In this document: positions 12,599 to 31,033 of the stretch, in pieces | How the letters are laid out: each line of letters opens with the position of its first letter | How positions within the stretch are numbered: position 1 is the first letter of the stretch | NCBI GenBank assembly: GCA_946965045.2 | Contig: OX337229.1 | Coordinates: 558,001 to 622,000 of the forward strand | Length of the DNA stretch: 64,000 nucleotides | Reading direction: 5' to 3' | Origin: Epithemia pelagica | Taxonomy: Eukaryota; Protista; Bacillariophyta | The notes under the pieces: generated by a model | What the model saw: only the letters and a program-made list of their open reading frames with translations | Database searches by the model: none | Told to the model about the DNA's origin: nothing | Translations under genes and position numbers: made by a program

Positions 12599-13834
12599 CT
12601 ACACGCATTCGGGTGGAAACATTTCTTCAAAACTATCGTCCTGAATGGCGTCTTGTAAAATTTGTTGGGTTCGAGATTTCAATGACGAGGAATCGTCCAT
12701 GGCAGCCACATGCCACTGCGTGGTTTCCACTGTGGTATTCAAAAGAACCAATCCACATAGCAATTCCTGCTCACTGGGTCGAGGGCACTCTACATGAATC
12801 AAACAGCAACACAAGTGAGTCGACATGTCATCATTTTCCATTGCCCATTTGGATCACATCGGGTGCAGCTACTTACGGACAAAGAGGGATGAGAGGACGG
12901 TCGCTGTGATTTGAAATGGACAGTTCAGTGTCGTTTCCAAACGTCGATGTTTCCCTCCAAATCCCGGTTCTTCTACGGACCCAGACAATGACGCCGACAT
13001 GGGCATCATTGTATTAGTGGTCATCCTGGAATGGTCACGATTCTCATTCATGGTTCGTTCTGGATCGAGCACTCCTTTCGAATGAGACGGATGTACCAAC
13101 GGACGAAGACGTGAATACGATGGAATAGGGCGTTTCGTCGTTGGGTCAACATTAGCGTCCAGTCCCCGATTGGGATGAGACTCGCTTGTTTGGAGTGGTA
13201 CAATGGTCGAATCGCACCCCAACCCACGCCGAAGGTTCCCTTTTACGGCCGATTCCAAACATGTCCCAATGATATCCTAAAAGTTTGGGGAACAACAACA
13301 CATCAAGAATCCATTCATGAGCCACAGACTATGCAACGAATCGGATTCCGGGTTCGAAGGACCTCCATTCCAGATCAAGTGACGTACCTGTGAAACATTT
13401 TTGGGATCAAACTGCACAATGACATCAAAGGTAAACGACGTTTTCACTGTCATGTCATTCATGACATGAAAACACAAATTGGAAAGAATGCCATGTTCCT
13501 CTTCCTCTTGTGGCACTGTACGCAAGGTAATGACAGGCTCCCGTCCACACATGGCTGGATTGGACGCGCAGGCGGCCCAATAAAAGAGTGCCACCGAACC
13601 CAAATCCAACCGGGCAAACTCCTCCGTCATCCCTGTCGGTTGTTCCATCGTTGTCGAAAGGATACGCCGAAACTCGAGATAGTCGGATTGCGTCACAAAA
13701 AGACCATCTGTCGATGACGCCTCCAGCGCATTCTGACAAGTCCCCAGGGCAGCATTCAAACGACGGTGGTTCTGTGCGTCACCACTGCCACGCGTGACGA
13801 AACTCAATACAAGTAAAACAGGAATCCATATCAT
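12599..13834 (-). CDS. Secreted hypothetical protein, 3 exons (13834-13388, 13276-12877, 12789-12599)
   Basis: Signal-peptide-like MIWIPVLLVLSFVTRGSG. Introns 13387-13277 (GTACGT...TTTTAG, phase 0) and 12876-12790 (GTAAGT...ATGTAG, phase 1) join three ORF-track pieces in frame. Confidence 0.78.
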
Positions 13835-15412: not shown

Positions 15413-15908
15413 GCTGTGTCGCAGTAGTAGAAGTCGTACGACTATTGAGACTGGTGGTTCGAAAGGGACCCTGATGACTGTCGTGCCGATCCGAATCCAA
15501 ACAATCCCGTTCTTGTTGCAACCACTCATCCGGGGTACTGGCAGTCTCACCCCCTCGCAGTCGCTTCTTTTTCTTTTGCTGTTGTTGGTGTGCCCACGAG
15601 GCTGATGAGGCCGAGGCCAAGGACGAGACACCATTGCTATAGGTTCGTGGCAAGGCGGCGCCGGCCAAAAAGGTGGTGGGGGTATCGACCAATTTGGTCC
15701 CCAAACTCAATCGTCGTGGTGTTTTGGGCTGGGCATAGTCTTGAGAATCTTCTTCGGGAAATAACAAATGAGCGGCCCATGCAGCCGTATCAGTGGGAGA
15801 CGAAAAGGACGACCCGGCCAAACTGGAATTGTCCAAGGACGATCGCCGTCGTTCCACCACACGAGGACGATGGAAACTAATTTCAATCGTTTGTTCGAGA
15901 GGATGCAT
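14901..15908 (-). CDS. Low-complexity hypothetical protein (poly-Q, acidic block)
   Basis: Part of the 410-aa ORF; plausible ATG at MHPLEQ. Composition and microsatellite-encoded tracts match neighbouring genes. Confidence 0.7.
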
Positions 15909-16979
15909 ATTGAAACTCTTGTAGATGTGTAACTGTGTGTGTATCTGTGTGTGTCTCTGTGTTTGGTTGGTTGTATGGAGCTCTTTCGAGAGGCGAAAGA
16001 GGAACAAGAGGTTGGCAGGATTTTGACGGGTCTGCTTCGATCCGTATTCACTCGTTGTGTCGTTTTCTGTGGGACAAGCCGTCACAAGAACAACAACAGC
16101 AATCAGAACGGCAGGGAGCTCTGCAACGGTCAAGGTAGCTTTGGACTACTACACTCTATAGAAAGCAGGACACACAACAATCAAGACTGCCTGTGCATGC
16201 ACTGTTCGAATCGTCGCTTTTGTTAGAGAATATCAGCCGGCAGAGAAAGTAGATGCTCGTAGTCGTAGGGCTCGACTTTTTGTCACTTGCATCCTGTTTA
16301 TTTTCCAGTGCCCTGCTGTCCTTTGTTTGTCTCGTGTGTCTGCCACAAAGAGAGAGAGGTTCCGACCGTTGCCCGACAAAGGTCGTTTGTCGTCTTTTTT
16401 TCTGTTGGGGGTCGTTCCATTGTTGTCCGACATGCTACTCTTTCCCATACAGTTTGGGTCTTTCTCAATATAATTCTGAGCATCCCCCAGCACAATAATT
16501 CTGTACAGATTTCCGAAGGGCTCAATGACTCCGGACATAACGGAGTTGCTCAACGGATCTGATTCTTGTGAGGGAATAAAGAGTGGGCATAGGAAACCAA
16601 CAGTCATTTGCGTGAAGGCTTAATTGATGTTAAGTGTGTTTCACTACGAGCTCCATCAATCGATATGTTGGCGCTCAGTTGCCCGTCCTTCACCTCGGTG
16701 AAACTTCCGGCCCAACGAGATTCACTTCACAATACATTTTCCTAAAGTAAAATGAATTGCCCCACATCGACAACATATTTTCTCGTAAGGTTAGTCTACC
16801 TCGCACTCCTACCGATGAACCTTTCACCATGACGTGGAGGCGCTTCCCCTTTCTGTGCGAGAAGTAAAAGTACTAGGACTACGAGTAAATCAAACTGTAC
16901 AAACGGCTTCCTAATGATAAGCCTATATTAGGTTGCTACCATCACTGCTGCTTGTTGTCCTCGTTGTTATCGGGGATTG

Positions 16980-18849: not shown

Positions 18850-20493
18850 TTAGGAAAGATCTGTTTTGCTCAATTGTTCCAAGGATTCATTCCATTCACG
18901 TTGTGTCGGAAAGGGTGTGGGGAAGAACCGGTCTCGTTGTCGTCGAATGTCGGCAAAGGGAACGAGTGATGTCGTCAATAAGGTTTGCAACGGCAATTGT
19001 CCAATGCCCCATCGACCTCGAAAAATGGAATCGCGCAAGGTCGTCACGGCTTGACGAATGCGTTGTCGTACGGTAGTGGATACTGGTCCAAAGGATAAAT
19101 CGTACAAGGCGTGGCCTTCGGGAACTTGACGTTGCGAATACGACACCAAACTGGCTTGCAGTGCCTCGGTCTTGTTTTGCCGCAGTTGAAAATTAGAGAT
19201 CAAACAATCGGCCAACACTTTGGCATCGGTCAAGGCCGAATTGACGCCCTGTCCGGACACTCCCCCCGTGGCATGGGCGGCATCTCCCACCAAGGCTACA
19301 GTGGACGAATAGTGATAGGTATTGCACACCACGGATGCGGCCGTCGAGACTGGGACCTGCGCCAATTGGGCAGCGGCCGTGTCGAGGGCAATCCCCTGCA
19401 AGAGCGGAAATCGCTTCGACAATTCCTCTTGGAGTTGTGTCTCATTCGTCGAAGCAAGAAGTGTATCGTTGGCCGATCGACCAGCCACCAAAACACAACA
19501 TCCTTGATTCACGGTCGGTTCGACAAAGGCGGTACAGGTCCCGGATTTGGGCACGAGGAGCGCCACGGCCGTGGGATCCAATTTGGGTGGCATGTGACCG
19601 AGTTGAACGACTTTGAATACACCGGGCAGAATGGATTTGGTCGTTGCAAAGGCGGGCCACGTCTCTTGCAGGCTTTGTCGTACCATGGAATTGACCCCAT
19701 CGCAACCCACAATCAAATCGTACGACGACGACGACGACGAGTCTGGCGTCGAAGGATTGCTGCTACTTTTTGTTGTCGTTGTCGTTGTCAAGATCCGACC
19801 CTGCCGTAGATCAACACCGGTCACTTTGGTATCGTACTGAATCGACACTTGTGGTTGTTGTTGTTGCTGTTGAGGAGTTTGAGTCGCCCAACGGTATTCC
19901 AATTCCTCCAACAAGACACGACACAAATCACTTTGGTACAAGAGCATGGACGGTTCGGCGGCTGTCTCATTTGTGGCCGTGGTGGTTGATTTGTTCTTTT
20001 GGCCATCTCGCAATCGCAACCGAAACGGTCCGACATGAAGATGAAATCGTTCACTGGCAAAACCAACCTGTTGCACCGCCTTCCACAAGGATGATTCTTG
20101 ATTTTTGTTGTTATTGTTGTGGTCGACGGATTGAATCGCCGTTCGTCCTCGCATACCAATGCCCAAGGCATAGGCTCGAGATTCTTTGGATACTTGCTTT
20201 TGAGGTCGTGATCGCGATTCAAACAAGGACACATGGGCTCCATTCGATACCAATTTGTGGGCCAATAACAACCCCGAAGGACCTCCGCCCACAATCGCCA
20301 CCGTCAATCCATTCAAGGCAGTGTTTTCGTTGTTCGACAAGGTGGTGGTTGATTTTGTCGAGAAAAGGGAAATGCTGTTCCTAAACCTGGTATTCGAAAA
20401 CGAATCTCTGGGAGGCACAAAACATGTTGTAGAATTCGGCCCAAACAAGCATGAGAGAATGAAAAAAAGGCGAAAGGAAAGGTAGAACGTCAT
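18850..20493 (-). CDS. FAD-dependent monooxygenase (kynurenine 3-monooxygenase-like family), probable plastid-targeting presequence
   Basis: VAIVGGGPSG, DLIVGCDGVNSMVR, VALVGDAAHA...GQGVNSAL. N-terminus MTFYLSFRLFFILSCLFGPNSTTC|FVP followed by an S/T/R-rich stretch. Confidence 0.88.
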   Translation of the reverse strand: MTFYLSFRLFFILSCLFGPNSTTCFVPPRDSFSNTRFRNSISLFSTKSTTTLSNNENTALNGLTVAIVGGGPSGLLLAHKLVSNGAHVSLFESRSRPQKQVSKESRAYALGIGMRGRTAIQSVDHNNNNKNQESSLWKAVQQVGFASERFHLHVGPFRLRLRDGQKNKSTTTATNETAAEPSMLLYQSDLCRVLLEELEYRWATQTPQQQQQQPQVSIQYDTKVTGVDLRQGRILTTTTTTKSSSNPSTPDSSSSSSYDLIVGCDGVNSMVRQSLQETWPAFATTKSILPGVFKVVQLGHMPPKLDPTAVALLVPKSGTCTAFVEPTVNQGCCVLVAGRSANDTLLASTNETQLQEELSKRFPLLQGIALDTAAAQLAQVPVSTAASVVCNTYHYSSTVALVGDAAHATGGVSGQGVNSALTDAKVLADCLISNFQLRQNKTEALQASLVSYSQRQVPEGHALYDLSFGPVSTTVRQRIRQAVTTLRDSIFRGRWGIGQLPLQTLLTTSLVPFADIRRQRDRFFPTPFPTQREWNESLEQLSKTDLS

Positions 20494-20515
20494 TGTGGTT
20501 CGGTATGTGATGTGC

Positions 20516-21361
20516 ATAAAAGATTTTTGGAAGTTGACGATATCTTTCGTGGTTTGGGGGATTGTAGCCCCCCAAAATAAAGATGACAGCCCCCTAATAT
20601 TTGATGCTAGTCTTACTATGCGCTGTGAACAGCAACGAATCTACTAGAGGAGTACAATAACCCAGTAACTGGAGTGTCGCCCTCGTCGATCTGGCTAGTG
20701 GATGCTTCGGGATGCGACAAATGGATTTGAATACTGCCGTAGGTCTATTAGAGCTATCGTTTCTCCCCAGAAAGCCGTTGTTCTGTCACCAAATTGGTTC
20801 CGGACGACTGCCTCACCCAAACACATGTTCTATTTTATACATTGAGATTGCTCCCCTCGCACCCTTCAGAGACCTCTCGATGGATGATCCCCCATCATCC
20901 TACCATAAACAAATCCCGCTACTACACAAACGACACCTGTCTTGACAAGAATCATCATTCTTAGTCTCGAAATCTCATGACAGCGGCACACAGAATCCCC
21001 ATAAAGCCAAGGCTCGCGGCCAAACCACCGTCGATCCAATGCAAGAGGAGTTCACTGGTACAAAATAAGGCAAAAAAGAGAATCAAGGCAAACAGCAGGG
21101 CCAAGAGAGCAATGGAGGCGCCATATCCTGGTACGGTCGTGTCTCAAAGAAAAAGTAAATAAACTGCGGACCAAAGGGTTTGTTCCACAACAGGGTGGCA
21201 TTCCAAGAAAAAACGGAATCATCATCATTGTCTCTTATTCTGCGCCGGATGATCTCTTGCCGTCTTGGTGGTTGTGATTGGATCCAAGAGCGTTTGATCC
21301 TGTACTTTGGTCACGAAAAAGATACCCACCAAGAAGCAAAAATTAAAAATTGCCACCAATA
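20516..21361 (-). repeat. Inverted, block-swapped duplicate of 28032-28864
   Basis: 20516-~21206 is the reverse complement of 28690 down to 28032. ~21208-21361 is the reverse complement of 28864 down to 28688. It contains a dead copy of the 3' end of the 27240 gene, with a 2-nt insertion. Confidence 0.92.
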
Positions 21362-21554
21362 GACTATGGATGAATGACGTTTGTTCAGCCTACTCTTTGG
21401 AGCACAGTGCTTTTCGAAGGATCGCGGGTTCTTCTCTCGACAATGATAGATCCTCATTGAACCGTACAAGAGAAGCTGATCGTCGTCTCTACTCTCCGAA
21501 ATAATACAACAAAAATCGAATAGCAGTGTTCCAAAAGACGAAGAAGAAGAAGGA

Positions 21555-23867
21555 ATGGTGGTCAAGGTGATTGATTTCTCAACGGCCTCGCCGTCGTCCG
21601 CCTTGAATCCCTTATCGGCCCAGGTACGACAGTATATCTGGGAGGAACTCCAACAAGGCTTGCAACAAGAGTCGGTCACAAGCCTCGTCTTGACGGGTGG
21701 GGTGCAACACTTTTCGGCCGGGGCCGATTTGACCGAATTTGGCTCCTTGTCGGCCGCCAATCTATCCACCACCAACAACAACAATAATCGCAGCAACAGT
21801 AAGCCCTTGACCTTGATTGACGTGGTCCAAGCCTTGGAGGATTCTCCCAAGCCCATTGTGGCCGCTATTGCGGGCGCTTGTTTGGGAGGAGGCTTGGAAT
21901 TGGCCTTGGCCTGTCATTATCGTGTGGCCGTATCGGCCAAAAGCAGCAACACAAAATTGGGTCTTCCCGAAGTCCACGTGGGTGTCATTCCGGGAGCGGG
22001 AGCAACTCAACGATTACCAAAGGCCATTGGATTGGCGGCCGCCAGTCAATTGATTTTGACCGGGTCGTCCCTGTCGGCCAAGGCGGCCCTGGCGCAGGGT
22101 CTTTTGGACGATACCGTGGCGACACCGTCCGAATTGCTACCACAAGCCTCGAAATGGGCCCTGTGGGCCGAAGTGTTGCCCCTGACGGATCCACAACGTC
22201 GTCGGTTGGGACGACAAGCCTTACGAGAATCTCCCGCCGTGGCCCACAATATTTTGCAACAAGCCGAATTGTCTTTACCGCGGTTTGGAAACCGTGGATA
22301 TCAAGCGGCTCTCACGGCATTGAGAGCCTCGTATTTGCCATTGGCCCAAGGCATGGAGGTGGAACGAAACTGCTTTTTGGAAACCTTGCTGTCCGAACAA
22401 GGGATTGCCCGACGACATGCCTTTTTTGCGGTACGGCAGGCACAAAAACACGTCTATCCCCAAATTGCCCACGAGTTGATCCAACAAGGACATGCACTCT
22501 TACAGCCACCAAAAACTAAGACAACAACAGCCGTGCCCGTGGCCGTGATTGGTGCCGGAACCATGGGAACGGGGATTTCCATGGTCTTGTTGCAAGCCGG
22601 CTTTCAAGTCACATTGGTTGATGTCCAAGAAACGGCCTTGGCACAGGGCATGAAACTGATTCAACAAACGTTGGAGTCCCAAGTTCGTCGCAAAAAAATT
22701 CCACCGGCCGTCGCGGCCGACCGGATGCAACGAATCCATTCGACCACGCGGCTACAAGACTTGGGACAATGTCAATTGGTGGTGGATGCCATTGTCGAAA
22801 ATATGCGCATCAAACAAGGTGTCTTTCGTACCTTGGATCAAGTCACACCACCGTCTTGTATCTTGGTGAGTAATACCAGTACCTTGGACATTGACGTCAT
22901 GGCATCCGTCCTCCAACCCCAACGACAGAAATGGTTTGTGGGGTGGCACTTTTTTTCACCGGCCAATGTCATGAAATTGGTGGAAATTGTTCGAGGCTCC
23001 CACACCTGTCCGCACGCCATTTCCTTGATGCAACTCTTGTCCAAAAAAATTGGCAAAATTGGTGTCGTGGTGGGCAATTGCGATGGCTTTTGTGGCAATC
23101 GATTGTTGCGGCCCTATACATTGGAGTCCACCTATTTGTTGGAAGAAGGAGTGGCTACTATTGCCCAGGTCGATCAAGCTCTGGTCGAGTTTGGATTTGC
23201 CTTGGGACCCTTTCAAATGGGGGACTTGGCCGGCAATGACGTGGGCTACAATATTCGCAAAGAACGAGGATGGATCGTGGATGCCAAGGACAAGCAGACG
23301 GTTGTACCGGCCAATCGTCCAGCTCGGTACTCGCAAGTCGCCGATGTCATGGTACGAGATTATGGCCGCACTGGACAAAAGGCCGGTAAGGGTTGGTACG
23401 ACTACGATCCCACCATTGGCAAAGGACGCACACCACTGCATTCCCAAGAAATGGCGGGTATTTTGTGGTCGTATGCGGCCAAGCCTCTGGCTGGAGTGGG
23501 TGGCAACACGACGGCTGCCATTGCATCGCCCCACGAAATTGTCTGTCGTTCGTTGTATCCTCTGGTCAATGAAGGATTCAAGTGTTTGGAAGAAGGCATT
23601 TCCTTGCGGCCCAGTGACATTGATGTCGTGTATCTGTACGGCTATGGATGGCCCGCTTGGCGAGGAGGACCCATGCATTGGGCCGACCATCAAGTGGGGT
23701 TGCCGCACATTTTGGCGTGGTTGCAAGACATGTACCGGAAGCATCCCACCTCGGAACAGTTTGCTCCCAGTGCACTGCTGGTGACCTGCGTCCAACAAGG
23801 TGTGACCGTCGAAGAATATTATCGACAACGAGAAAAGGCGGCATCCACTACGCGAAGCAAATTGTAA
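21555..23867 (+). CDS. EHHADH: Peroxisomal bifunctional enzyme (enoyl-CoA hydratase / 3-hydroxyacyl-CoA dehydrogenase)
   Basis: FSAGADL, CLGGGLELALACHYR, GLPEVHVGVIPGAGATQRLP, VIGAGTMG, SNTSTL, GWHFFSPA, GFCGNR. C-terminal SKL (PTS1). Confidence 0.95.
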   Translation: MVVKVIDFSTASPSSALNPLSAQVRQYIWEELQQGLQQESVTSLVLTGGVQHFSAGADLTEFGSLSAANLSTTNNNNNRSNSKPLTLIDVVQALEDSPKPIVAAIAGACLGGGLELALACHYRVAVSAKSSNTKLGLPEVHVGVIPGAGATQRLPKAIGLAAASQLILTGSSLSAKAALAQGLLDDTVATPSELLPQASKWALWAEVLPLTDPQRRRLGRQALRESPAVAHNILQQAELSLPRFGNRGYQAALTALRASYLPLAQGMEVERNCFLETLLSEQGIARRHAFFAVRQAQKHVYPQIAHELIQQGHALLQPPKTKTTTAVPVAVIGAGTMGTGISMVLLQAGFQVTLVDVQETALAQGMKLIQQTLESQVRRKKIPPAVAADRMQRIHSTTRLQDLGQCQLVVDAIVENMRIKQGVFRTLDQVTPPSCILVSNTSTLDIDVMASVLQPQRQKWFVGWHFFSPANVMKLVEIVRGSHTCPHAISLMQLLSKKIGKIGVVVGNCDGFCGNRLLRPYTLESTYLLEEGVATIAQVDQALVEFGFALGPFQMGDLAGNDVGYNIRKERGWIVDAKDKQTVVPANRPARYSQVADVMVRDYGRTGQKAGKGWYDYDPTIGKGRTPLHSQEMAGILWSYAAKPLAGVGGNTTAAIASPHEIVCRSLYPLVNEGFKCLEEGISLRPSDIDVVYLYGYGWPAWRGGPMHWADHQVGLPHILAWLQDMYRKHPTSEQFAPSALLVTCVQQGVTVEEYYRQREKAASTTRSKL

Positions 23868-24200
23868 AATCACACGATTGCGCGTCAAGAAACGTTCCAA
23901 GGACATTACTAGAACTAAACCACTTCTAGATAGTTCTTATTCACCATCCACTGGCTGTCGTTCGTGCAAAAGGTGACCCGAATAATCGACACGGACGATG
24001 CAGCGAGACTTGAAGAGTGGAACCACCCAAGGTACGCTCCTGGACGCGTCAGTCATAGTCTTGCGATCAAGAAGAAGAGACAAAGCCTCTCGAAAACTCT
24101 TTGTCGTGCCACCACTGTTCAGGTGGCAAAACAGCGGTCACTGGCGAAGGAGGAGGAAGAAGCATTTGTGGAAAAATTTTTTCTCATCAAGACGGTTTTG

Positions 24201-25214
24201 CTAATCTCGAAACTTGCAAACCAATAGAGTCAGAGTGACAACTGCCGTGCAGTGGTACAGGAGGCCCCCTCCTAGGGTTTCGGTCAAAACGTGATCGAGC
24301 CAACAAAACACAACATGAAACAAGGAAAGAAAGAGTAGCAATCCGAGGAGCGAAGCCGTATGCCACCACCCAAGCGATGGGTCGAAAAAGGGATACAGAA
24401 ACTGGGAACCATGACAACGATCCACCCAAAGATCTTTGACGGCATAGGAAAACAAAACATAAAGGATTCCAAATAGATTGGTAAATGGCAAGTCGGTATA
24501 TCGAATCGCGAGTCCACCGAGCAATGTCACCTCAAGGATACAAGCGATAAAGTTAAAGTTGTGTTCAATCAAGGACATTGTATTGTTGAGCAAGCCCAAG
24601 TTGGTCTTGTCTTCCAACTTTTGCGCCATGGGCCACAACACAAACTTTACCACTGTCGTCACGAGCATGCTGGCTGGAGCTGCAATCTCCCAGCCCACCA
24701 ATGCGATTCGCAAGATCCATGGTGATAAAGAAGTGTTGAACGTGTGAATGAAGATGGGAATAGCACCAAGCAGTATAAATACAAATCCCTCCAGCACCCA
24801 AGCCCAGAATGTAAAATACGACAAGTTGAGGGACCCTCGAAATACACTACCAGAGTAGTGAAACCCACGAAACGGAATTTTGACTGGTTGGAGGACACTT
24901 TCTGGAGCGTACTCGGTGATTTGGTCCCAGACTCCGTACCAAAATTGGTACAGTGAGTCACTCAGCATTAACGACCCAAAGGCCAGTCGAAGAATGCCGA
25001 CGTGAAGAGCCGTCAAATATTCGGGAAAGACGACCGTGGTGAAGGTGTCGGCATTGGCAATATCATCTAAACTTTCCAACGTAGGAAGGTTTTGGATACA
25101 AAAAGCTGATGTGATGGCAATGAACAGAATCGTATGCCAATGAGGATATACGGATACTGCCGGTTTCTTCTCGCCCATCGTGCATTTATCTTCGTTAGGA
25201 TCTTGGATCACCAT
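24201..25214 (-). CDS. Multi-pass membrane protein, FAR-17a/AIG1-like; paralog of 27240-28283
   Basis: About 7 hydrophobic segments; YFTFW, EHNFN, QFLYPFFD, ends KFRD. Colinear with the 27240 protein (TFTxxVFPEYLT, LLGGL, FRD). Confidence 0.75.
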   Translation of the reverse strand: MVIQDPNEDKCTMGEKKPAVSVYPHWHTILFIAITSAFCIQNLPTLESLDDIANADTFTTVVFPEYLTALHVGILRLAFGSLMLSDSLYQFWYGVWDQITEYAPESVLQPVKIPFRGFHYSGSVFRGSLNLSYFTFWAWVLEGFVFILLGAIPIFIHTFNTSLSPWILRIALVGWEIAAPASMLVTTVVKFVLWPMAQKLEDKTNLGLLNNTMSLIEHNFNFIACILEVTLLGGLAIRYTDLPFTNLFGILYVLFSYAVKDLWVDRCHGSQFLYPFFDPSLGWWHTASLLGLLLFLSLFHVVFCWLDHVLTETLGGGLLYHCTAVVTLTLLVCKFRD

Positions 25215-25496
25215 TGTCTCGATTCTCGATGCTTGATGAAGGGGGTACGTGTTAAGGGCGACTGCAGAACCGGACGGCGCAAAGGACTTAAGCCCAATTA
25301 CAACGTGCCTGCGCGCTGCTCTACCCATTGTCTATTCGCTACCGCATCAATCGAGCTCTAGTAGGAGTAACAACTCATAGGAGTGGGTGAACTGTCCTAA
25401 GAGAAGCAAATTTCCGATGGATATATCAACATGTTTCTGGTTTCTATTGATACAACAAGTAGCTAGGTAGTGTCATATCCGATGGTTCATGATGTT

Positions 25497-26918
25497 TCAC
25501 TCACGACCTTCGTCGTTCTCTGCTACATCTTCCACGTCCTTGTCGTCATCATTCGGACTGGGATTGGTGTCCTTGAGTTCTACCACCAACTGTTCTTGTT
25601 CGTCCGGATCCATAAAGGATTCCTTGTTGTCATCCTCTTCCGTCAGTACTGTCAGGTTATCGTATTCCAATTCTTGGACCATGCCGATATCGGTTGGCCC
25701 CATGGGAGGTCCAGCGGGAGGGAGGGGCCATCGCATAAAAAAGGAATGATGAACCAACAAGAGCGGAGCCACGACATGCAAGGAGAACCAGGGAATCATG
25801 GTGTGCACCGAAAACAATTGTCCATACAAAGGGTTGGCTTCCACCATGAGATCGTAAATTGGCTGTAGGATAATGCGACAAATCCATATCCAGAAAAAGG
25901 TCAAGACAATCTGGGAAAAGAAAAAGGAATAGATACCCCGTAGGGGTTGGACCATTTTGTGAAAGGGCCAAAAGTCAAAGGCGACAGTGTGGAAGAGAGA
26001 CCAACTGATTTGGGAGGCTCCAATCGCGTCGGAATAAAACAAATTGTCGACTCCAGCGGCAATAATAATTTCGTAAATGGACCAACCCAGCAAGACCGTC
26101 GTGGCTGTCAATGCTGCATGTTGGAGCCAGGGGTGAGGGAGCAGAGTAAAGGGCCAGTTTTGAAAGACAAGGATACTGGCAAAGTTGTGGACCCAAACAA
26201 TAATGGATACGGCGCATCCAAACCACCATGGACCAGAGGCGGGTCCTTCTGGATTGGAGGAATCATTGGCAATGGGGCCAATGTAGTCGACAAATTGAAA
26301 CATGACCACCGCTAAAAGGATACAAATAACGGAGGAAACAACCATATTGACGGGCGGAAAGGGGTGAAGGGGAATAAGGGGAGAGGCCGATGTCTGAATA
26401 TCCAAAACCCACCAGAGAGTCATCCAAAAGAGTCCAATACCAAACCAAGCACCGGCGGGGAAAAGAGGGTATCCCCACCATACATTCACAAAGAATGCAG
26501 AAAGCGAGACAGCCATTGCAAGAGTCAAGCCTGTCATGACAAAGCCAATGACCAAACGACCATGGCCATTCCAAAAGGGCTTGGCTTGTTCAATTCCAAA
26601 CGGAGCCGCCAATGGCCAACCACCTCCGACAATTCCGAATATCAAAAGATAATGCAAAAACCAAAAGGACCACGGTATGAAGGTCTCAACAGTCCATTTT
26701 GCGTTGGCGCTCATGGCGGCATAAAACATGACCCATGAGAGGGTCACGACGACAAAGAAGCGCAAAAAGGCGACATGAAAGGGGAGAATCGACACTGATC
26801 CAATCTTGCGAGGACGAGCAGCGGAGGTTTGAGAAGAAGAGTCACCCATTGGTTCAGTCTTCTTGGTAGGAGGAGAAGTACAAGTTAACGAAGGAGAAAG
26901 AGAATCTTTGGGACACAT
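25497..26918 (-). CDS. Polytopic membrane protein (about 11-12 TM), probable transporter
   Basis: 495-aa ORF with many TM segments ending in recurrent GWP / NWPF / FWPF / RWPL motifs, and an acidic C-tail. Start codon uncertain (26918 or 26849). Confidence 0.8.
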   Translation of the reverse strand: MCPKDSLSPSLTCTSPPTKKTEPMGDSSSQTSAARPRKIGSVSILPFHVAFLRFFVVVTLSWVMFYAAMSANAKWTVETFIPWSFWFLHYLLIFGIVGGGWPLAAPFGIEQAKPFWNGHGRLVIGFVMTGLTLAMAVSLSAFFVNVWWGYPLFPAGAWFGIGLFWMTLWWVLDIQTSASPLIPLHPFPPVNMVVSSVICILLAVVMFQFVDYIGPIANDSSNPEGPASGPWWFGCAVSIIVWVHNFASILVFQNWPFTLLPHPWLQHAALTATTVLLGWSIYEIIIAAGVDNLFYSDAIGASQISWSLFHTVAFDFWPFHKMVQPLRGIYSFFFSQIVLTFFWIWICRIILQPIYDLMVEANPLYGQLFSVHTMIPWFSLHVVAPLLLVHHSFFMRWPLPPAGPPMGPTDIGMVQELEYDNLTVLTEEDDNKESFMDPDEQEQLVVELKDTNPSPNDDDKDVEDVAENDEGRE

Positions 26919-27239
26919 GAGACTTTGGTCGTCGTCTTCCCATGGTCCTCGCAGTCTGAAAGAAGCAATTGGAATTTGAGGCAATCAAGCTTTTTAGAAC
27001 TTTCCATCTCATTCATTGAAAACACCTGCGAGTCCATTATTTGACGTCATACGAATCACACACACGCACTCGAATCTGCGTACTCTTTTTTCTATAGAAA
27101 ATCTATCCGATCAGTCGCGCGGTCAAACTCGGTCGCGCTACAAATTGGAACCCGGAGGTAACCAATTTGGAATGATCCAAAGATTTTTTGGATTTCTTGT
27201 GCGGCGCTGATTCTTTCGCCCTGTAACCCAACGAACACC

Positions 27240-28283
27240 ATGTCAAATACCAAAGATGACGGCGAACGAAAGAAGAAAGCGTTGACTTCGGCCCCACCGC
27301 CCTGGCACTCTGTATTGTTAATAGTTGTCATTGGAGGATTCTTTGTGGCGACCCTTCCGTCGTTGGACACCTTGGATGAGGCGGCCACCATGGAAACCTT
27401 TACCCAGATTGTCTTTCCCGAATATTTAACTCTTTGGTCCTTGGCTTGGATTCGAATGGCAATTGCAATTTCCATTTGGGCCGTAACGATTCACACGTCG
27501 GTCCTTTCCGAGGGTTGGGTCCAGGAAACCTCCTACTCCAAACACAGCAAACTCCTCATGACACCGCTCAAAATATCGGGCTGGAAAACATTGGCTCCCT
27601 TCACGTCCATTTCTTGGAACCTTTTGGGACTTTCCTTTTCCCTCAGCTCTTACATTGCCTTTCAAGCGACTCAGAACCAAGACGTTTCGCCCTGGATATT
27701 ACGGACAGCTCTTTGTGTCTGGTCTGTTGCGGCGCCGAATACCCTGTTGGTGGCGGCGGTGATTCGATATGCAATTTGGCCCGCCGTCTTGGCCAAGGGA
27801 AACTCAACGGCTCCACTCAAGTCCGTACGGTACGTATGTCTATGTGTGGAACGACGAGAGAGGATGACACGTGTGACTAACGGAATGTTGTTGGACGGAT
27901 CAATCAGAAATGTGTTTATGCACAATATCAATGTGTTTTATGCTGTTTCCGAGAGTGCGTTACTGGGCGGCCTTCCGGTACGATGGTCCGAATTGAGTTT
28001 GGCTCCGCTGGTGGGGTTTGCCTATGTGGTCTTTTCCTGGAATGCCACCCTGTTGTGGAGCAAACCCTTTGGTCCGCAATTTATTTACTTTTTCTTTGAC
28101 ACGACCGTACCGGGATATGGAGCCTCCATTGCTCTCTTGGCCCTGTTGTTTGCCTTGATTCTCTTTTTTGCCCTGTTTTGTACCAGTGAACTTCTCTTGC
28201 ATTGGATCGACGGCGGTTTGTTAGCGAGCCTTGGCTTTGTCGGGATTCTGTGTGCCGCCGTCATGAGATTTCGAGACTACTAG
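27240..28283 (+). CDS. FAR-17a/AIG1-like membrane protein with a probable stop-less 78-nt intron (27830-27907)
   Basis: PFTSISW, MHNINV, QFIYFFFD, ends RFRDY. GTACGT donor, CTAAC branch site and ATCAG acceptor. The 26 extra residues have no counterpart in the paralog. Confidence 0.8.
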   Translation: MSNTKDDGERKKKALTSAPPPWHSVLLIVVIGGFFVATLPSLDTLDEAATMETFTQIVFPEYLTLWSLAWIRMAIAISIWAVTIHTSVLSEGWVQETSYSKHSKLLMTPLKISGWKTLAPFTSISWNLLGLSFSLSSYIAFQATQNQDVSPWILRTALCVWSVAAPNTLLVAAVIRYAIWPAVLAKGNSTAPLKSVRYVCLCVERRERMTRVTNGMLLDGSIRNVFMHNINVFYAVSESALLGGLPVRWSELSLAPLVGFAYVVFSWNATLLWSKPFGPQFIYFFFDTTVPGYGASIALLALLFALILFFALFCTSELLLHWIDGGLLASLGFVGILCAAVMRFRDY

Positions 28284-28848
28284 GGATGATGATTCCTCTC
28301 ACACAAGCGAGAGGTCTCGTTTGTGTAGTAGCGGGATTTTGTGTATGGTAGGATGATGGGGGATCATCCATCGAGTGGTCTCGGAAGTGCGGGGGGAGTA
28401 GACTCAATGTATATAGAATGTGTTTGGGTGTGGCAGGCGTCCGGAACCAATTTCGTGACAGAACAGAACATGATGCGGCTTCCTGGGGAGAAACGATAGC
28501 TCTAGATCTACGGCAGTATTCAAATGCATTTGTCGCATTCTTCCAAGGATCCGCTAGCTCTAGAGAGACGAAGGGCACTCCAGTTTCTGCTAATAGATTC
28601 GTTTGTTGTTCACAGCACATAGCATTAAATATTAGGGGGTAGGACTAGGACAACCCCCAAAACCACACGTCAACTTCCGAAGAATTTTATCGGTGGCAAT
28701 TTTTGCTTTGTGGGTATCTTTCTTCGTGACACAAGATGGACCATCCAGTCGTCGTCCACCAAAGTACATGATCCTTGAAGCCAAGCGCTCTTGGATCCAA
28801 TCACAAAACCAAGACAGCAAGAGACCATCCGACCCAATATAAGAGACA

Positions 28849-30120
28849 ATGATGATGATTCCGTCCTGGCGGCCCCTGGGAGTGGCCGCATCGGCCGCCC
28901 TGGTCTATGGATGGGCTCGGTTGGATTGCGATCCTGGCTTGTACTGGTACGAACGCTATTGGTTTCATGACAATGCTCTTGCCAAACAAGAGTATTATCG
29001 GAACAAGTCCATTTGGATTGTGGGTGCCAGTTCGGGAATTGGTCGCGAATTGGCCCTCCAATTGTCCCAACTGCCCTGCCGTCGTCTCATTTTGACCAGT
29101 CGGAACCACGACAAACTCCAACAGGTGGTGAACGACTGCCAACGCAAGGCACGAGACACCACGGACAACAACCACAACAAAAACGAGACGGTTGGCTGCT
29201 GCGAGTGTTGGGCGTTGCCGCTCGATGTCACCAATCATTCGCAACTCCAAGAAGCCGTGCAACAACTCCACGAACCATTGGATGGTCCGCCCTGGTTGGA
29301 TATGGTCATTTTCAATGCCGGTGTAGGACAATTGTGTCCGGCACTCGAAACCCCACCCCACCAAGTCGAACAGTTGTTTCAACGCAATGCTCTATGGCCC
29401 ATGATCTTGCTCGCCCTCCTCCTCCAACGACGACAGCAGTCTCCTCCTTTCGAACCACACGATTCTGCTGTTTCTTCCACTCCTACAACAACAACCACAA
29501 CCACATCTTACACGGAACCCAGCAAACCCAACCACAAGAGTCCGCACATTGTGGTCACGAGCAGTGTGGGTGCCACACTGCCCTTGCCCCTTTCGGCCAC
29601 CTATGCCGCCACCAAGGCGGCTCTCCAACAATACCTCCAAACCTTGGCCACCGAACGACCCGACTTGAGCATTACCGTACTATGTCCCGGAACGGTCGAT
29701 ACGCCCTTTCATCATTCCAAACACAGCGTCACTGCAACGAACGATCCCAACGCAACAGTGGCGACTACAACGACTACAACCAACGCATCTTTCCAAACGA
29801 CAATTCACGACACGACACAACCAAACAATCCTACAAAAGCACCAACGACACAACCGACGTCCCCGTTGAAAATGTCGGTCCAACGATGTGCTCGCTTGTA
29901 CTTGGCCGCCGTGGCCCACCACAACAATGGAGGAGGAGGATTCCGGGAACATGTGATTGCCCAGCAACCTACATTGACGGCCGTCCACCTCCATCGGTGG
30001 TTTCCCACCCTCTCGAGATGGATCTTGGCACGCATTGGTACCAAACGAATTCAATTGTGGAGACAGGGCAAAGATTTGTACGATCCAGCCTCGTGGACCA
30101 ACCGTCCCCACCAGAACTAG
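28849..30120 (+). CDS. Short-chain dehydrogenase/reductase (DHRS7-like) with N-terminal anchor
   Basis: IWIVGASSGIGRELA, LDMVIFNAGVG, TSSVG, YAATK, LCPGTVDT. Confidence 0.9.
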   Translation: MMMIPSWRPLGVAASAALVYGWARLDCDPGLYWYERYWFHDNALAKQEYYRNKSIWIVGASSGIGRELALQLSQLPCRRLILTSRNHDKLQQVVNDCQRKARDTTDNNHNKNETVGCCECWALPLDVTNHSQLQEAVQQLHEPLDGPPWLDMVIFNAGVGQLCPALETPPHQVEQLFQRNALWPMILLALLLQRRQQSPPFEPHDSAVSSTPTTTTTTTSYTEPSKPNHKSPHIVVTSSVGATLPLPLSATYAATKAALQQYLQTLATERPDLSITVLCPGTVDTPFHHSKHSVTATNDPNATVATTTTTTNASFQTTIHDTTQPNNPTKAPTTQPTSPLKMSVQRCARLYLAAVAHHNNGGGGFREHVIAQQPTLTAVHLHRWFPTLSRWILARIGTKRIQLWRQGKDLYDPASWTNRPHQN

Positions 30121-31033
30121 GTAGAACCCATTCACAGAAATAGAGTTTAGCGTATCACCCAACGTGCTGTAGAACAAAAAATAATACGCCGTGGCTGCAA
30201 GAATAATAGAAAATTTGGCTGTGGTTGCTTGTCCTCCTCTCACTCAGTTCCTTAGTAATTTAAAGTCCCAACTTGGTTCTACGCCAGTGACGTCGCTTGG
30301 CATTCCACTTGATGGTATTGTCTGTCCGCATACGAATCCATTGTGGCAAGGGTCGATTTTGACGCTGCTTCTTGGCCAAGGTACGCTTGGTACGAAATGT
30401 CTTTTGCGCCGGCTATTAGAACGTAGTGCCAGAAAGACAGTTGTTTGGTTGGGATTCACCACCAAGGCATTGACCATGGAAACCAGAATGGAAGAGATAG
30501 ACAGATAGACAAGACGGTCAGAAATGGAACCTTGCTTCAAAATGCTTTCCATCATTCTAGAGTATTAGATCGAAGATGACTTACCATGTTGATATCCCAA
30601 GTTTGCGGTAGACTCAACAACACAGACCCAATAGCAACTTGTCCTGGTCCTGCCGCTGCTCTAAAGGAAACGATAAATCAGTGTTGCGGTAAGCGGTAAA
30701 TGCGATCCAATAATATCAGCGACTACCCCCCTGTGAATATGCGACGGCCAGACGATGGGTATCGTATTCGCTTATGGGTCGCTCCCATTGTCATGGCGAG
30801 ACAAAACACAAACTCTGACGCAAAGCTAGAGCCAACTCCTAGGAGTAGCTATCCTCTACTCCGAATGGAGAAGAAACGATGAAAGATGAAATTCCCATGT
30901 GGATTTATATTTCTAGTTTAACAAGATTTATACACTAGACGACGAGAAATCCCAATCTGTCGTCACCCAACAGTAGCAGTGATATATAGCAAATCGCTTC
31001 GTGCAAATGGTATACTTCGAGCATGCCCTTTCT

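Follow-up and report, generated by a model that had tools for sequence, protein, structure and literature searches.

The 64-kb window analysed here (the whole stretch of diatom DNA, in whose positions coordinates are given) contains a 6.7-kb segment that lies inverted between two pairs of duplicated blocks. The open reading frames (ORFs) of this locus are long and mostly intron-free. The left flank, which has not moved, carries a gene for an FAD-dependent monooxygenase, here called W (18850..20517, minus strand; Pfam FAD_binding_3, E 6.5e-23). It is followed by an enoyl-CoA hydratase/3-hydroxyacyl-CoA dehydrogenase bifunctional enzyme, Z (21555..23867, plus strand; Pfam ECH_1, 3HCDH_N and 3HCDH), by g1 (24201..25328, minus strand) and g2 (25497..26984, minus strand), and by X (27240..28283, plus strand), a conserved diatom protein with a hydrophobic C-terminus. 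The right flank, also unmoved, carries a short-chain dehydrogenase, SDR (28849..30120, plus strand; Pfam adh_short, E 1.8e-25). No Pfam family was found for g1, g2 or X at E values up to 0.05. The closest named relative of Z is a protein of Epithemia clementina (71% identity), and its near matches all come from diatoms. g1 and X are paralogues of approximately 32% identity. The family to which they belong is diatom-wide, with a hydrophobic C-terminus and no Pfam domain, and counts more than 130 homologues, nearly all of them unnamed.

Structure of the duplicated blocks

A repeat search was run over 19.0-30.5 kb, the left and right loci were compared by BLASTN and the block ends were placed by semi-global alignment. 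Inverted repeats were the sole repeats detected in the searched region, and all of them join 20.8-21.3 kb to 28.0-28.9 kb. BLASTN of the two loci returned two main high-scoring segment pairs (HSPs) and three short extensions. The larger HSP, in block B, pairs left 20663-21214 with the reverse complement of right 28029-28589 (575 columns, 86.1% gapped identity, E 1.7e-170). Short HSPs widen its reach to left 20590 and right 28639, and semi-global alignment gives a full extent of left 20518-21214 and right 28029-28690; the left end at 20518, which pairs with right 28690, is the base adjoining the ATG of W. The second main HSP, in block A, pairs left 21213-21296 with the reverse complement of right 28782-28864 (89.3%, E 5.7e-26). 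A further HSP pairs left 21307-21344 with the reverse complement of right 28698-28734, and the full extent by semi-global alignment is left 21213 to approximately 21361 and right approximately 28691 to 28864. The right locus reads B then A and the left locus reads the reverse complement of B then that of A, whereas a plain inverted copy would place the reverse complement of A before that of B. A preliminary description of this DNA had reported such a block-swapped inverted duplication; both BLASTN and the semi-global alignments recover it, and its coordinates were right to within a few bases. The left and right copies diverge by 7-13%. No further copies of either block were found by BLASTN elsewhere in the window, and neither block has the look of a transposable element.

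Read from left to right, block B' (x; 20518..21214) consists of the 5' flank of W and an X 3'-end remnant. It adjoins W as it did in the ancestor, with homology reaching the AT of the W start codon. Block A' (y'; 21213..21361) is an inverted copy of the proximal 5' flank of SDR together with its first 16 coding bases, and lengthens the upstream region of Z. The inverted single-copy segment M' (21362..28028, plus strand; 6.7 kb) holds the upstream region of Z, Z itself, g1, g2 and codons 1-263 of X, in an orientation opposite to that in E. clementina and in a metagenomic diatom scaffold (L005). Block B (x'; 28029..28690) supplies the functional 3' end of X, namely its last 85 codons, and approximately 407 nt after them, a copy of the putative W promoter region that points at SDR. 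Block A (y; 28688..28864), in its ancestral position, comprises the 161 nt upstream of the SDR ATG and the first 16 coding bases.

Gene order in related diatoms

The locus was compared with loci of E. clementina (L004, L007 and L009), a related diatom contig (L003), the more distant metagenomic diatom scaffold L005 and a further locus, L008. Orthologues of W are 57% identical in E. clementina (L009) and 55% in L005, and that of X in E. clementina, ACA910_017083, is 63-71% identical. An orthologue of g1 lies downstream of Z in L003, L004, L005 and L008, adjoined by orthologues of g2 (62-75%) in L003, L004 and L005. With RPL39 denoting the gene for ribosomal protein L39e, the order in E. clementina is RPL39 SDR(-) Z(+) g1(-) g2(-) ... 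X(+) W(+). In matching orientation the window reads RPL39-SDR(-), X(-) g2(+) g1(+) Z(-), W(+), and then two genes in common with E. clementina. SDR(-) stands head-to-head with Z(+) in E. clementina L004, followed by g1(-) and g2(-), and in L009 X(+) immediately precedes W(+) in the same orientation, with a 446-bp spacer; by comparison, block B has a non-coding part of 407-443 nt. L003 reads SDR(-), a retrotransposon, Z(+) g1(-) g2(-), and L008 reads SDR(-) ... Z(+) g1(-). In L005 the order is SDR(-) Z(+) g1(-) g2(-) W(+); its called SDR and Z genes are 155 bp apart, and W comes after g2 in the orientation predicted. The preliminary description had placed Z and SDR head-to-head in the ancestor and X, its 27240 gene, upstream of the monooxygenase. 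The first arrangement is seen in E. clementina, in L003 (with the retrotransposon between) and in L005, and the second in E. clementina.

Both flanks are collinear with E. clementina, the right one through RPL39-SDR and the left one through two genes past W, which match window 15663-15917 and 13373-13756 on the minus strand. The flipped part is only Z-g1-g2-X, and its opposite orientation in the relatives, relative to these flanks, bears out the inversion that had been proposed. A maximum-likelihood tree of Z places L005 outside a clade of the window, L003 and E. clementina (support 100/99), with L008 further out. Because L005 branches outside this clade and shows the uninverted order, the order in the window is the derived one. 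The E. clementina loci contain one X tail and no X fragment near SDR-Z.

The right flank is anchored in synteny by the last RPL39 exon (30260..30409, minus strand), whose translation is 94% identical to that of E. clementina L004 6516-6665; Pfam Ribosomal_L39 is found at the corresponding place in Phaeodactylum tricornutum. The exon is convergent with SDR, and the orthologue of SDR likewise adjoins RPL39 in both E. clementina and P. tricornutum. Rfam and tRNA scans of 17-33 kb returned nothing to account for a 150-nt stretch with 94% conservation to Epithemia, which turned out to be this exon.

On E. clementina JBGMNV010000093.1, at approximately 802-880 kb (between L009 and L007), some 67 kb separate g2 from X-W, compared with 255 bp in the window. 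This interval is probably an expansion rich in transposable elements. Orders differ again in Nitzschia inconspicua, with Z(+) SDR(+), and in P. tricornutum, with RPL39(+) SDR(-) ... Z(-) X(+). This is an old gene neighbourhood, with more than one rearrangement in its history. RPL39, SDR, Z, the X/g1 family, g2 and W stay close together across pennate diatoms, from Phaeodactylum to the source genome, while their orders and orientations vary; they may form a conserved functional neighbourhood in which local inversions have recurred.

Allelic copies, junctions and age

A second contig of the same assembly (L001) encodes proteins 94-98% identical to Z and X. It is collinear with the window over 17.1-30.8 kb, carries both blocks at both sites and is probably the other haplotype, so that the comparison with the other haplotype called for in the preliminary description returns the same structure. 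When the four copies of block B were aligned, 39 informative sites grouped them by locus and 3 of 42 conflicted. The duplication is therefore older than the split of the two alleles. Gene conversion between the copies of block B was considered and rejected, given that only these 3 of 42 sites conflict with the grouping by locus. In the left copy the last 84 codons of X (20961..21214, minus strand) carry a +2-nt frameshift and a 3-nt deletion, both common to the two alleles in the four-copy alignment, and on L001 a tblastn search with X matches the left copy in two separate frames. Since the frameshift and the deletion are present in both alleles, this X-tail piece is dead.

L001 also carries mobile elements. 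A 5.6-kb non-long-terminal-repeat (non-LTR) retroelement with an RVT_1 domain (L001 3438-9015) stands 29 nt upstream of the W ATG, within block B'. A second element, of 1.8 kb (L001 17072-18869), lies within block B; it has perfect terminal inverted repeats of 29 nt, and its 319-aa ORF belongs to no Pfam family. Both copies of the putative W promoter block on this contig thus carry mobile elements, at roughly homologous positions. Divergence between the window and L001 is approximately 1% in W, g2, SDR and the outer flanks. It reaches 5-10% over 20.4-25.6 kb (B', A', Z and g1), with 5.2% in the coding sequence of Z, and the high stretch starts at the left breakpoint. A possible cause of this uneven allelic divergence is a mosaic of old alleles with subsequent loss of heterozygosity.

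Among public reads, the locus was found in four runs, where it is present as short Logan unitigs. Exact unitigs cover 20406-20688 and 21296-21713 in three runs and agree with the assembly where shown. Loose unitig ends at 21211 are contigs of the right-hand copy.

The rearrangement created two new adjacencies only, B'/A' at 21213 and B/A at 28688-28690. At the B'/A' joint (x/y'; 21212..21214) the alignments show block B starting with GTC and block A ending in CCGT with C next, which gives 2-3 nt of microhomology, GT(C)/(G)AC. The homology of B at the B/A joint (x'/y; 28688..28690) ends in TTTTAT, and TAT stands before GGTGGCAA in both copies of block A, a 3-nt overlap. No inserted or templated extra sequence was seen at either junction in the alignments. 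From sequence, the joints would appear to have formed by non-homologous joining at 2-3 nt of homology. The motif TCCTGG, which the preliminary description had noted at both outer ends of the right copy, is indeed present at 28035-28040 and 28864-28869. It does not lie at the junction, being 6 nt inside the end of block B, and was rejected as the joining homology, as only GT(C) abuts the joint. A 6-mer common to two random 14-nt windows of this sequence would be met in approximately 2% of cases by chance, the test being post hoc.

Substitution divergence between the copies is 6.8% for block A (9/132), 8.5% for non-coding block B (32/375) and 6.3% for the X tail (15/240). Block A and non-coding block B do not differ (Fisher p = 0.71), and the two duplications are therefore equal in age within error, as one event requires. 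Both are present in both alleles.

Origin of the rearrangement and its consequences

We think it likely that one rearrangement with staggered breaks inverted Z-g1-g2-X and duplicated both breakpoints. The ancestral order would have been W(-) X(-) g2(+) g1(+) Z(-) SDR(+), and the event falls in a pennate diatom lineage, after its split from Epithemia-like lineages and before the divergence of the present two alleles. On the left, staggered cuts at the start codon of W and at codon 264 of X would have lain approximately 695 nt apart; on the right, cuts 161 nt upstream of the SDR ATG and 16 nt into its coding sequence would have lain approximately 177 nt apart. The sequence between paired cuts would then have been retained at each side, whether long overhangs were filled in or two sister chromatids were used. 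Joining of the ends without homology, at 2-3 nt of microhomology, would yield the product W-B'-A'-[Z g1 g2 X]-B-A-SDR, and the spare X tail would have decayed afterwards. The data show the block structure, the inversion and its polarity, the ancestral adjacencies and the timing relative to the alleles; the staggered cuts, the route of repair and any influence on expression are inferred.

Several observations weigh against this account. In E. clementina, reading along the one contig in the direction used above, X-W is reached approximately 67 kb after g2, past one called gene; X is missing from L005, and the full uninterrupted ancestral order is found in no single relative. The non-coding parts of blocks A and B give only chance-level short matches to the SDR-Z and X-W spacers of the relatives, and because of this the relatives cannot fix the nick positions; sequence comparison supports single-copy ancestry of x and y for their coding part only (the X tail and the SDR start). 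The microhomology was read from copies that have since diverged by 7-9%, which leaves its exact count uncertain, and 2-3 nt fits end joining and replicative template switching equally. Indeed, the same sequence product can come from staggered nicks with fill-in, from staggered breaks in chromatids or from replicative template switching. Lastly, the reads, which consist of short Logan unitigs only, include no listed unitig bridging the B'/A' joint at 21213.

The staggered-break reading has to be set against other routes to this structure. A stalled or broken replication fork could have switched template twice at microhomology (fork stalling and template switching/microhomology-mediated break-induced replication, FoSTeS/MMBIR), recopying x and y and reading the middle backwards. 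The 2-3 nt of microhomology at both new junctions would suit this route, as would the imperfect longer match GTC...TCCTGG at the two joined ends (approximately 2% by chance), and human duplication-inversion-duplication (dupINVdup) events have been credited to it on like evidence (PMC6286558). Such microhomology is just as typical of end joining, however, neither junction bears the inserted or templated sequence, and the sequence gives template switching no preference over staggered breaks; we regard this route as rather unlikely, if deserving of some weight. A series of steps is very improbable. In that case a plain two-break inversion would have gained its inverted copies before or afterwards, through separate small duplications or later recombination between repeats. 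Three independent events would have to land exactly at two breakpoints, and a plain inversion at these breaks would cut X at codon 264 and remove the SDR start, a lethal-looking intermediate. Moreover, the duplications are of equal age and both alleles show the simple product.

The blocks could also have arisen with no inversion at all, if a circular copy of 28029-28864 had reopened at the B/A boundary and been inserted, inverted, between W and Z. This was the alternative named in the preliminary description, and by reasoning it gives the same block permutation. It fails the test proposed there, however: with respect to the two collinear flanks, the middle segment of the relatives points the other way. 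The left block also begins exactly at the W ATG, so the insertion would have had to replace the whole W promoter, and we give this explanation next to no credence. An assembly artefact, or ectopic recombination between pre-existing inverted repeats, is scarcely more credible. Nothing speaks for an artefact save that no unitig is explicitly shown across 21213. Copies that are 7-13% diverged are too different to confuse an assembler, and as they occur on two independent contigs misassembly is ruled out; the same joints are found on L001 at approximately 1-9% allelic divergence, with exact unitigs at 20406-20688 and 21296-21713 in three runs. Recombination between repeats would leave simple inverted repeats rather than swapped blocks, and the breakpoint regions of the relatives lack a duplicate of the X tail.

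Inversion by this duplicating mechanism, with the footprint that it leaves, is well documented in flies, mosquitoes and humans, and best described in fruit flies. For the order L-x-y'-M'-x'-y-R, Ranz et al. (2007, PLoS Biol 5:e152; PMC1885836) derive an origin either in two pairs of staggered breaks with fill-in and non-homologous joining or in double-strand breaks that are staggered between sister chromatids. Among the Drosophila melanogaster group inversions, duplication length has a median of 321 bp and a maximum of 1.9 kb. The two copies share 88 +/- 5% identity and are for the most part decayed, and both breakpoint regions are duplicated in six inversions (PMC1885836). The diatom locus resembles these cases in being inverted relative to outgroups and in its inverted duplications of partly genic, probably formerly unique sequence, arranged x-y' ... 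x'-y. Further likenesses are the duplication of hundreds of bases with copies approximately 88% identical, the decaying spare gene piece and the absence of repeats at the breakpoints. It fits the Drosophila pattern in order, duplication size and copy identity. It differs in that the host is a diatom (a stramenopile) and in scale, as 6.7 kb with four genes are inverted here rather than chromosomal segments that distinguish species; moreover, both breaks fall in or at coding sequence in a very compact gene neighbourhood.

Human dupINVdup events, which have microhomology at their new junctions and for which replicative template switching has been proposed (Sanchis-Juan et al. 2018, PMC6286558), are like the diatom case in their duplication-inversion-duplication product with junction microhomology. 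However, they span hundreds of kb and are de novo or rare, whereas the diatom event is small, old and present on both contigs of one assembly. Inversions mediated by inverted repeats or transposable elements are likewise flanked by inverted repeats, but those repeats pre-exist, are simply inverted and usually occur in many copies; the diatom blocks are unique in the 64-kb window, swapped, and drawn from the genes' own flanks. Full-text literature searches found no description of the mechanism in diatoms. The mechanism is thus a known one and not new; what is new is the lineage, the diatoms, in which it is seen.

Two coding sequences were hit by the cuts, and breaks that left no duplications would have cost X 85 codons and SDR its start. 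Thanks to the duplication of both stretches, W retained its putative promoter, X its 3' end, Z the whole putative bidirectional promoter of old and SDR its start. W still adjoins its whole former upstream region and Z is preceded by the former Z-SDR spacer (193 + 161 nt), while SDR keeps the proximal 161 nt, upstream of which lies a forward-pointing copy of the W upstream region. In structural terms, then, the earlier suggestion that the duplications let every gene keep its flank is right. A chimeric ORF that would fuse the copied start of SDR to the copied tail of X was also considered. The frames do not match and a stop follows after approximately 57 codons, and no new gene results.

Taken together, these data describe a clean, outgroup-verified inversion in diatoms in which both breakpoints are duplicated and can be placed to within a few bases. 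An inversion that cuts two coding sequences in a gene-dense region could still be harmless. The locus would also be a natural experiment in promoter duplication, with a putative copy of the W promoter upstream of SDR and a copy of the SDR-proximal promoter upstream of Z. We tentatively suggest, as a possibility we ourselves find rather doubtful, that micro-inversion by staggered breaks may be a main shuffler of gene order in compact diatom genomes, tolerated through the rescue by duplication of the genes and promoters that are hit. In the present case it might also have brought regulatory rewiring, if the full copy of the W promoter, directly upstream of SDR in firing orientation, were to tie together two genes of an old conserved neighbourhood, RPL39-SDR-Z-X/g1-W. 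As a target for genome scans, block-swapped inverted repeats would make the evolution of gene order in diatoms testable.

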